This document shows positions 37,201 through 40,200 of a stretch of DNA of 64,000 nucleotides, piece after piece (position 1 is the stretch's first letter; each line of letters begins with the position of its first letter). Below the pieces are notes generated by a model. The model saw only the letters and a program-made list of their open reading frames with translations, searched no databases and had not been told where the DNA came from. Source of the DNA: Asterias rubens (taxonomy: Eukaryota); contig NC_047062.1 of assembly GCF_902459465.1 (NCBI RefSeq), positions 28,954,001 to 29,018,000 of the forward strand, written 5' to 3'. Position numbers and translations under genes: made by a program.

Positions 37201-40200
37201 TCCTAAGTTAGGAAGAGTTACTCGTCCTAACTCGAGATAAGACGAGTCCTAACTCTTTGTGAAATCGACGGCAGAATCTAAATCACCAACTTCATGAAGG
37301 AAAGTTCAGTGAGGTATCACTTTAGAGTTAATTTATCACTTCAGAGTTATTTGTTGCCGTTTTGGATTGAGCTTTCTGCTTGTTGACTCTCATAAACTCA
37401 TAGCTGTATTTAAAAAGAAAAGAAAACATCAACAACATTTAGACTACAAAGATTGTGAATTGCAGGCTTGTGTGTGTAGAGAAATTAAACAGAAGTAGTG
37501 TAGATTCAAGAAGCATCATTTGTGCAGTCTTTACATGCACTCCTACAAATACAATGTTTAAAGTTAGTGAGTGAAGGACTTCAAAAACGAAAAACAAAAA
37601 AGAGATAATGAAATAAAGCTATAGAAGTCTGCGCAATATGTTAAGTTGTATCTGACATTTTAAATGCATATGACGTCGTTTAAGTAGGGCACTCTCGATG
37701 CCTATTGGCCAATCCTGTGCCCCGCATGCATTATGTACATTTCTGTTGTTTCACCATCGTTTTACCTCTAAAATGCGACAGTATGGCTTCATTGCATAAA
37801 GTTTGCTCCAAAAGCAATTCTGCATGCTCAAAAATATATCTATTTTTTTTCTCTTGAAATGTCATGTTGGGATTGCATAGATGATGTTTGTTGAAACATA
37901 ATTAACGGATTATTTTGAATTTTGTTTAGCATAGAAAAGTTAAAATCACCTCTAATCAGAACACGCATTAAGCAAAACTGAGCATTATTTTAAGCAACAG
38001 GATTCATTTAATTTTATTTACGTGCTTCTCGTCGGTGATCGGCTGCCATCTTTGTTGCCATGGATACCATCAGAATTGGTCTGGAGGGGGAGTCATTGGG
38101 GTCTCTTGCTGACTGGAAAACCCTACACAAAAGGGTCGTTGACAGGTCTGTTCTTCTCTCTGTTTTTCTACATGCATGGTTTTGAAGTGTGTCCTTGAAC
38201 TTGATGTACCCCAATTTAATAATTACGTACATGTACTGGCATTGTGAGCAGCTTCTTGGAGGTGGCAGCAAACTTACTTTTTCAAATACAGCCATTTTCA
38301 AACACTTTAGCAGGTTATTTTGCTAATGTGTGTGTTTCTTTTAGAGGACAGATGACATGTCAGCATGCTAATTTGGGTCTGCATACCGGGAGACGTGAAT
38401 TTTGTATTTTTGTTTCAAATTTGTTAACTGGAACAAAGGCCGTACTATGGAGGGCGGGCACACAGCTCTCATTCACCATTCAACGCTTTGTCTCACCCAA
38501 GCAAAGATATTGACAAAATACTAGGTAGGAGACAGGCTTTCAATGAATGCTACTCCTGCAAACCAATGCCAAGTCAAATTAAACAGTAAGTTTGTTGCCA
38601 CTTATGTATTTTAAGTTGTTTTTCAATGCCAAAGTCTATCAGTAGACAACAAATCTAATTTCCCATTCCAGCTCTACGTTGTAATTTTTGTTTTTGTCCA
38701 ATGCGAAAATCCCTTTTGGTTACCCAAGTCTGTCGATATACATTTTAACTGTTATTTCTTAACATTCTCTTTCTGATCTGTCATTTACTTTGATAACTAC
38801 TTCTATACTAAGCTTTGCTTGCTAGTTAACTCTCAAGATGTTATTTGTCTTTTTTTAGTAGAATGCTATAGTTAATATTTGTCTGGAATTATCCATAAAC
38901 TATTTTGTTCTAAACTTTGTGTAATAATTGTTTGATGTATTGTGAGTAGTTTTTCTTTTTCGTAGTGTGGTACAAAAAACTTGTATTAATTAGACTAGTT
39001 TATAACTATTACAGATACACAAAAGCAAAGCAATAGTTAAATGAAGTTAAATTGAATGTCACTTGATTAGATTTGCTTTGTATCGGAAAATGTGTTGAGT
39101 ATTAAGTGGCCATAAATAACCTTAGTCACGAAAGATACTGATGGTAAAATTTATAAGTTTGAAATTGACTTGTAATAACAGTAGGTTTGTATAAGGTGTT
39201 TTTTTATCAAAGCGTCTTAACAATCGCTCCTGTTTATTAGGCTGAAGGTATTTCTGAAATCATCTTAAAAGTATGCCGGCCCGGTGACCAACAAGTCGTG
39301 GACATTTACCTAATTTGTTACGACAAGCATCTCTACTCCTGGGTGATGAGAAGTGATTATGGTTCATTGCTAAAAGGACTCTGGTATCATGACTGGTCTG
39401 GTCTGTGATCCAACATAGTGATGATGTGGCCACTAGATCTTGAGTCTTCCCACTAGACCATTTGGCTACAGCCGCTTCATTGAGGCATTGAGGAAATTGT
39501 TGTCTTATGAGCTTTTTGGGCTCTTATCGTTTAACCCTATAAAGATTCCCTCAGACACTTGATGTCCTGTTAATTTTTCTCTTTAGTCAAGAAAAATGTG
39601 TGCAACAAGTAAAACACCCTTTTTTTTCTTTACAGTAGGATCAAGATGATAAAGCAGTAAGAAATTCATTTCAAGTTTCAAACCACAGAATATTAAAAAC
39701 ATTGGAAAAATAGAGAAAATAAAAATAGAATAGACAACATAGACACAGTGATGATTAAAAAAAACCAGAGTCTGCAAGCTGAGGCTTAAAGAGTTTGCCA
39801 GTAAACTTTAGAGTTTGTGAATCGTGCAACAAACTTTGTAAAGGGTCAATGAGTGAATAATTTGAAACAAATTGGGCTAAACTCATAAGATCATACGTGT
39901 ACATGTATTAGTCATTAATTTGTTCCAACTGCTAGACATACATTTTGTGAAGCAAACTGAATGATACGTAAATCTTTCCACTTGCACACCCACTTATCAC
40001 CATACTCCACCCTGGTTCTTAATGGTTGACTGAGTTATAACACCGGTGTGTAATATTTCTCTTCAGTGCGTATGAGATCATCAGGCTGAAGGGATACACA
40101 TCATGGGCTATTGGCTTGAGTGTCAGCACGCTGGCACAGTCTGTACTCCGGAACCAGAACGCTGTCTTTGCTCTCACTACACTGGCACAGGTAAATATGA

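Follow-up and report, generated by a model that had tools for sequence, protein, structure and literature searches.

The DNA analysed here is a stretch of 64,000 nucleotides (nt) from the sea star Asterias rubens (NCBI RefSeq assembly GCF_902459465.1, contig NC_047062.1, positions 28,954,001 to 29,018,000; hereafter the window, to which all coordinates refer unless another locus is named), and it carries on its plus strand an L-lactate dehydrogenase-like (LDH) gene. Our subject is the segment 38074-38145 in the intron between exons 5 and 6 of this gene, which a first-pass annotation, made from the letters alone, had described as a hidden, diverged duplicate of exon 5 spanning 38039-38150. The evidence given below makes it very probable that this segment is a genuine LDH cassette exon (exon B), included by alternative splicing, which originated when the 3′ third of exon 5 was duplicated in tandem and which is inserted between exons 5 and 6. 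The segment first proposed is thus real, but the exon proper is confined to 38074-38145, after the AG at 38072-38073; the earlier start had been set at 38039 because an in-frame TGA precedes it at 38036-38038, which makes 38039 the first codon after the stop.

The LDH gene and its predicted isoforms

Six-frame inspection of the window revealed the LDH gene as seven exons on the plus strand. Searched against 1.84 billion representative proteins, exon 4 retrieved a relative of 353 amino acids (aa; P0003); here an exon-5-like stretch comes first, then a second WKDIHKEVVNS and then AYNIIKLKGYT. Used as a query in turn, P0003 identified the gene as an echinoderm LDH, its matches including "L-lactate dehydrogenase-like isoform X1 [Asterias rubens]" of 375 aa (P0157) and isoform X3 of 340 aa. 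Exon boundaries were set by an exhaustive search over GT/AG sites against isoform X1 (XP_033647420.1), which was rebuilt residue-exact from window exons with a single GT-AG solution. The window exons also encode the catalytic and substrate motifs of LDH (the GEHGD His, the D[ST]ARF Arg and the GYT Thr), and precomputed annotation places both Pfam domains, Ldh_1_N (PF00056) and Ldh_1_C (PF02866), in P0157, in P0163 and in the cluster of P0332. Pfam and PDB sequence searches with peptides of 24-48 aa returned no match because such queries are too short, the true exon 5 likewise giving none. The gene of the window is the A. rubens LDH gene, with the following parts:

28079-28210, plus strand, LDH coding exon 1, with the ATG at 28079 (splice reconstruction of XP_033647420.1)
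29224-29341, plus strand, LDH coding exon 2 (splice reconstruction; tblastn)
30009-30119, plus strand, LDH coding exon 3 (splice reconstruction; tblastn)
31008-31244, plus strand, LDH coding exon 4, SNPVD ... GEHGDTS, ending in phase 1 (six-frame reading; tblastn; splice reconstruction)
33037-33154, plus strand, exon 5, constitutive, 118 nt, parent of the duplicate, with terminal AG and strong donor gtaaga
33907-33939, plus strand, microexon A, 33 nt, in X1 only, with acceptor tacttgtag|C and donor GG|gtaatt, its junction codons encoding Ser at the start and Gly at the end
38036-38038, plus strand, in-frame TGA, the upstream bound of the open frame of the cassette
38072-38073, plus strand, AG acceptor preceding cassette B, its polypyrimidine tract weak; Acanthaster retains TATCAGA
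38074-38145, plus strand, cassette exon B, 72 nt, with both ends in phase 2, a partial copy of exon 5 (its last ~20 codons), the junction codons encoding Arg or Gly at the start and Ser at the end
38146-38152, plus strand, weak donor of cassette B, GTCTGTT, kept in Asterias amurensis and Acanthaster planci
40067-40190, plus strand, exon 6, in frame with exon 5, A or B
40799-40981, plus strand, final coding exon including the stop codon

Three isoforms are predicted by RefSeq:

X1, XP_033647420.1, 375 aa: exon 5, A and B
X2, XP_033647429.1, 364 aa: exon 5 and B, with junction codon AG|A encoding Arg
X3, XP_033647438.1, 340 aa: neither A nor B

These RefSeq cluster members differ solely by A and B, and both X2 and X3 are derivable from the splice sites of X1. 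The length of exon B is divisible by three and, with the AG at 38072-38073 and the GT at 38146-38147, its inclusion and its skipping both keep the frame. The segment is therefore not hidden, as had been claimed: X1 and X2 of the same gene contain the same exon at identical coordinates, and being missed by the open reading frame (ORF) track does not equal being unannotated. The suggestion that the copy is translated agrees with these models, in which it forms an in-frame part of the predicted proteins. To our knowledge, alternative isoforms are issued by Gnomon only with transcript support. The first-pass annotation did not include microexon A, which is spliced ahead of B in X1; RefSeq, for its part, is silent on the exon-5 origin of B, on its conservation in other echinoderm classes and on the first copy having decayed in sea cucumbers. 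The splice sites of exon B, weak yet conserved, would fit a regulated exon.

Likeness to exon 5 and conservation among echinoderms

Re-reading of both stretches bore out the base-level comparison on which the duplicate had been proposed. The copy reads TGG AAA ACC CTA CAC AAA AGG GTC GTT GAC AG|GT at 38114-38145 and exon 5 reads TGG AAA GAT CTC CAT AAA GAT GTG GTA GAA AG|GT at 33123-33154, with eight of 11 residues identical, 11 of 32 nt different and the codons for L, H, V and V differing at the third position only. Both end in AG|GT at a phase-2 donor, the in-frame join to exon 6 is used in the predicted proteins, and an ATT GGT is shared upstream, the loop of the copy being four codons longer. 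At the DNA level, the likeness between exon 5 (±30 nt) and 37950-38250 was not above the window background (the local alignment scored 13, and the 99th percentile across 300-nt window tiles was 14). A tblastn search of the six-frame window with the exon-5 peptide returned the segment as best non-self match (E=0.08), and a hidden Markov model built from 157 non-echinoderm LDH exon-5 tails ranked it first after exon 5 among 4017 six-frame segments (E=0.046). The third-best tblastn match, at 38077-38106 in another frame and resembling the 5′ part of exon 5, was taken as chance, being unconserved in that frame in Acanthaster.

Within the window alone the duplicate signal is thus marginal, and it is the cross-species data that settle its reality; a marginal within-window signal (E ~0.05) can evidently be a real exon. 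BLASTP of the exon-5 tail against the cassette yielded E-values of 1e-5 in Acanthaster and 6e-5 in Asterias. In Acanthaster the alignment runs over LGAEVESAGSLSEWKKLHKKVV, includes IGSEVD/LGAEVE and has one 4-residue gap, and therefore reproduces the "IG plus 4 extra codons" of the first reading. What was taken for a diverged exon-5 duplicate is accordingly a copy of its 3′ ~20 codons, partial and not of the whole exon.

Orthologues of exon B were evident in other sea stars. Asterias amurensis has the same X1/X2/X3 set (375/364/340 aa), and Acanthaster planci has isoforms of 374/363/339 aa with the cassette LGAEVESAGSLSEWKKLHKKVVD and a microexon A orthologue at L001:~11229-11261. At the genomic loci fetched from Acanthaster, Apostichopus, Holothuria and Diadema, the cassette always forms an exon of its own within the corresponding intron and ends AG|gt. 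Asterias and Acanthaster share 67% identity over exon B, as opposed to 43-44% over the 100-nt flanks and 46% over the 20 nt before the acceptor, and 7/8 bases of the exon B donor (GTCTGTT) are kept. Between these two genera, the proportions of non-synonymous (pN) and synonymous (pS) differences, after Nei and Gojobori, were 0.217 and 0.781 for exon B, and 0.186 and 0.531 for exon 5; between A. rubens and A. amurensis exon B shows two synonymous changes and no non-synonymous ones. This comparison of orthologues, which is of the dN/dS type that had been called for, upholds the proposed protein-level selection, with pN far below pS and identity above that of the flanks. The decay that absence or frameshifting of the segment in relatives would have signalled was not seen, B being open and in frame in both Acanthaster and A. 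amurensis. On these substitution patterns, exon B is under purifying selection. A region-restricted homologue search and a full-length X2 search yielded neither additional clusters from asteroids or ophiuroids nor a sea-star Logan transcript with B.

An uninterrupted 300-aa LDH ORF close to the Asterias protein was found separately at L008:94-996 (GCA_014845345.1, JACSEG010015012.1, 1765 nt); it holds a microexon-A-like SKQDVPKETKG and no cassette B. Its sequence points to a contig derived from cDNA or to a processed retrocopy, and in both cases to a spliced exon 5-A-exon 6 isoform in another species.

Holothurians carry a canonical second copy, WKDIHKEVVNS, in Apostichopus japonicus (XP_071840828.1), Holothuria leucospilota (KAJ8032210.1) and several Logan RNA contigs, and contig SRR33243118_18321 (1394 nt) holds both copies in an uninterrupted ORF. 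The second copy is present in all holothurian transcript-derived or RefSeq proteins retrieved, the sole skipping model being an older one of A. japonicus (PIK34979). The exon-5 copy of these animals lacks the family residues and reads DWQQVQTDLVD, DWKQVQTDLVD or DWDKVETGLVD; judged from these sequences, the holothurian first copy is degenerated and the second is fixed. In Diadema an optional 57-nt exon, STSSDTEKSLDGILQSVKNS, occupies the same junction, its homology to A and/or B being uncertain. The homologous intron of the crinoid Antedon (424 nt) and of the hemichordate Ptychodera (785 nt) contains no cassette-like sequence; the Asterias, Acanthaster and Holothuria counterparts of this intron measure 6.9, 9.3 and 14.6 kb, respectively. 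The simplest history would be a partial exon-5 duplication in the eleutherozoan ancestor, optional in sea stars, fixed in sea cucumbers and lost or degraded in urchins.

Other LDH variants were also noted in these groups. In holothurian LDH genes the homologous intron holds additional tiny alternative microexons (the 15-nt SCPER, L004:14240-14254, in Holothuria; IPGDKQ in another species; P0340-P0342, P0338), which vary the length of the linker between the two helix copies. Among the LDH isoforms of Strongylocentrotus purpuratus (P0405, P0407, P0408 and P0410) there is a 24-aa N-terminal extension resembling a targeting peptide, MMMLMRMMRLQLAPL..., other length variants lie away from the exon 5/6 junction, and crinoid LDHs have long N-terminal extensions.

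We weighed other origins and uses of the segment against these data. Convergence, either of a stretch exonised from the intron that then acquired the helix motif or of asteroid and holothurian cassettes that arose independently, would account for the chance-level DNA likeness to exon 5 and for the unalignable linkers of the two classes. The DNA signal is missing, however, because synonymous sites are saturated (pS ~0.8-0.9), and every position conserved across the family (W, H, K, V, V and S) is common to the two copies, as is the donor phase, while the Acanthaster likeness extends across IGSEVD/LGAEVE with a single gap; convergence is therefore very unlikely.

The segment could also belong to an alternative first exon, with an internal promoter and translation from the ATG at 38060 producing a ~130-aa C-terminal LDH fragment. 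This ATG is in frame, follows the stop at 38036 and has a good context (gccATGG), and 350-400 nt upstream lie a cAMP response element (CRE)-like TGACGTC (37671) and a palindromic CCAAT box, ATTGGCCAAT (37704), both kept in A. amurensis. Their retention there is nonetheless uninformative, the flanks being 91-100% identical between the two species, and both motifs are missing from the Acanthaster intron, ATTGGCCAAT from the whole of it. Moreover, the nearest upstream ATG in Acanthaster is out of frame, conservation starts exactly at the acceptor TATCAG|A and not at the ATG, and no retrieved RefSeq isoform begins at this position, which renders a first exon highly improbable.

That B is a decayed pseudo-exon, a relic of exon-5 duplication no longer spliced or translated, would be suggested by its marginal likeness within the window (E 0.05-0.08), restricted to the 3′ third of exon 5, by the in-frame TGA at 38036 and by the weak acceptor. 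We regard this as extremely unlikely for an exon that is open, in frame and more conserved than its flanks, with pN well below pS, and that lies inside RefSeq isoforms of three sea stars and has a counterpart in all holothurian transcripts retrieved. As to B being mutually exclusive with exon 5, the classical outcome of tandem duplication, its homology, strand, position directly downstream and identical donor phase would allow it, but B (72 nt) cannot replace exon 5 (118 nt, entered in phase 1) because B must follow an exon that ends in phase 2 and exon 4 ends in phase 1, an exon 4-B-exon 6 join shifts the frame, no AG within 38039-38113 has the required phase and X1 and X2 include both exons together, so that this use is next to impossible and B is an insertion between exons 5 and 6, not an exon-5 replacement.

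Membership of a repeat family was rejected as an account of the segment, which is single-copy in the window: intron 5 contains four short repeated patches, none of them at 38000-38200. A ~245-nt interspersed repeat family (83-89% identity) has at least seven copies in the window, one of them just upstream of exon 5 at 32701-32944, with a 22-nt inverted repeat at 32737-32783 and the look of a short interspersed nuclear element or a miniature inverted-repeat transposable element; further copies lie at 2407-2640, 4161-4401, 8238-8481 (minus strand), 14146-14372, 15417-15582 (minus strand) and 16908-17152 (minus strand). About 40 nt past exon 5, at 33192-33206, TGACGTGGGCGGG combines an ACGTG core, resembling a hypoxia response element or a CRE, with a GC box. 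Hypoxia has the LDH genes among its classical targets.

Predicted effect on the helix beside the active site

The exon 5/6 boundary falls inside the motif W-x-x-x-H-K-x-V-V-x-S|A-Y-E, which, by established LDH structure, is helix α2G of the mobile α1G-α2G region beside the active site. Alignment of 96 LDHs revealed that the Ser before AYE and the first Val of V-V are invariant and that the His is at least 90% conserved. When B is included, the second copy alone is contiguous with AYE, and in X2 the invariant Ser comes from the second copy only (VVER... as compared with VVDS-AYE).

We propose that a tandem duplication captured the 3′ third of exon 5, comprising IG-loop-WKxLHKxVVx plus the donor, and that a new acceptor came into use directly before the IG codons of the copy. 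Because exon B measures 72 nt and runs from phase 2 to phase 2, it is inserted between exons 5 and 6, and its optional use, with or without the 33-nt microexon A, yields predicted LDH subunits with lengths of 340, 364 and 375 aa. When B is included, the protein has two tandem copies of the N-terminal half of helix α2G. The second copy, whose AG| end rebuilds the family-invariant Ser-Ala-Tyr-Glu junction with exon 6, is for that reason most likely the working α2G helix, and the first copy plus a Gly/Ser/Glu-rich linker (and A in X1) would form a surface excursion of 24-35 residues in the α1G-α2G region flanking the active site. The AlphaFold2 model of the A. japonicus protein fits this arrangement, the second copy and AYNIIKLK forming one helix (252-271) and the degenerate first copy plus linker lying in a low-confidence loop (224-250). 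The model of Asterias X2 retains the overall LDH fold, with a predicted template modelling (TM) score of 0.85, and matches LDH crystal structures at a TM score of 0.9 (0.83/0.91 to human LDHA, 7m2n_B). From these considerations, the second copy would be the one that occupies the helix in sea-star inclusion isoforms.

Several points weigh against reading exon B as an alternatively included exon-5 duplicate of eleutherozoan age whose second copy takes over the helix. In the Asterias X2 model residues 240-270 have a predicted local distance difference test value below 50 and it is the first copy (230-238) that is modelled as helix, which leaves this model ambiguous; the case for inclusion in sea stars comes from isoform models predicted by RefSeq (Gnomon) for three species; camarodont urchins (Strongylocentrotus and Lytechinus isoforms) have no insert at the exon 5/6 junction; and what links the cassettes of asteroids and holothurians is solely their position, phase and motif, so that they may stem from independent duplications.

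The functional effect is probably a remodelling of the α1G-α2G region, and inclusion may tune catalysis or kinetics, stability or interactions, giving isozyme-like variety from one gene. More tentatively, eleutherozoans may produce such LDH variants through the optional duplicated half of α2G, and the lineages might represent successive stages of helix replacement. On this speculative scheme, sea stars would keep both copies intact with the second optional, sea cucumbers would have fixed the second while the first decayed to a loop, and camarodont urchins, crinoids and hemichordates would be without the copy. The cross-class series offers a natural experiment in which a duplicated secondary-structure element may take over from the original, and if the inserted form proves kinetically or regulatorily distinct (e.g., hypoxic or tissue-specific), it would constitute an undescribed route to LDH isozymes.

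Relation to known systems

No paper on the echinoderm cassette, its exon-5 origin, the decay of the first copy or the RefSeq accessions was found in a literature search that lay outside subscription journals. Exon B is real, selected and alternatively used, and represents an annotated yet undescribed alternative exon from tandem exon duplication. The assertion that no exon-duplication isoform of an animal LDH had been described does not hold as it stands, since the exon is in RefSeq and alternative splicing of a shrimp LDH has been published: the Litopenaeus vannamei gene is described, as cited in PMC12192809, as giving two subunits by alternative splicing with hypoxia-differential expression (Sonanez-Organis et al. 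2012, Biochimie 94:1250). Shrimp and starfish thus both derive more than one LDH subunit from a single invertebrate gene, through alternative splicing and not through duplicated genes. In the starfish the isoforms are set apart by inserted stretches of 24 or 35 residues, whereas those of the shrimp reportedly differ by a mutually exclusive swap of equal-length exons, at 332 aa each.

Vertebrate LDH-A, LDH-B and LDH-C belong to the same enzyme family as starfish LDH and share its fold, and vertebrate LDH genes have a 118-nt exon of the same phase as starfish exon 5. No insert at the VVxS|AYE junction was present among the vertebrate LDHs retrieved. The vertebrate isozymes, textbook products of gene duplication, stem from whole-gene duplicates, whereas the starfish variants come from one echinoderm gene that diversifies by a partial exon duplication co-included with its parent, placing a tandem repeat into a helix that borders the active site.

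Tandem exon duplication is a recognised source of alternatively spliced exons (Kondrashov & Koonin 2001; Letunic et al. 2002). Like members of that class, exon B is a homologous exon in the adjacent intron, on the same strand, with its donor phase kept and alternatively used. It departs from the class in retaining the 3′ third only and in that both copies are included together as a tandem repeat in the protein, where mutually exclusive use is the usual outcome; this co-inclusion is the unusual feature of exon B.

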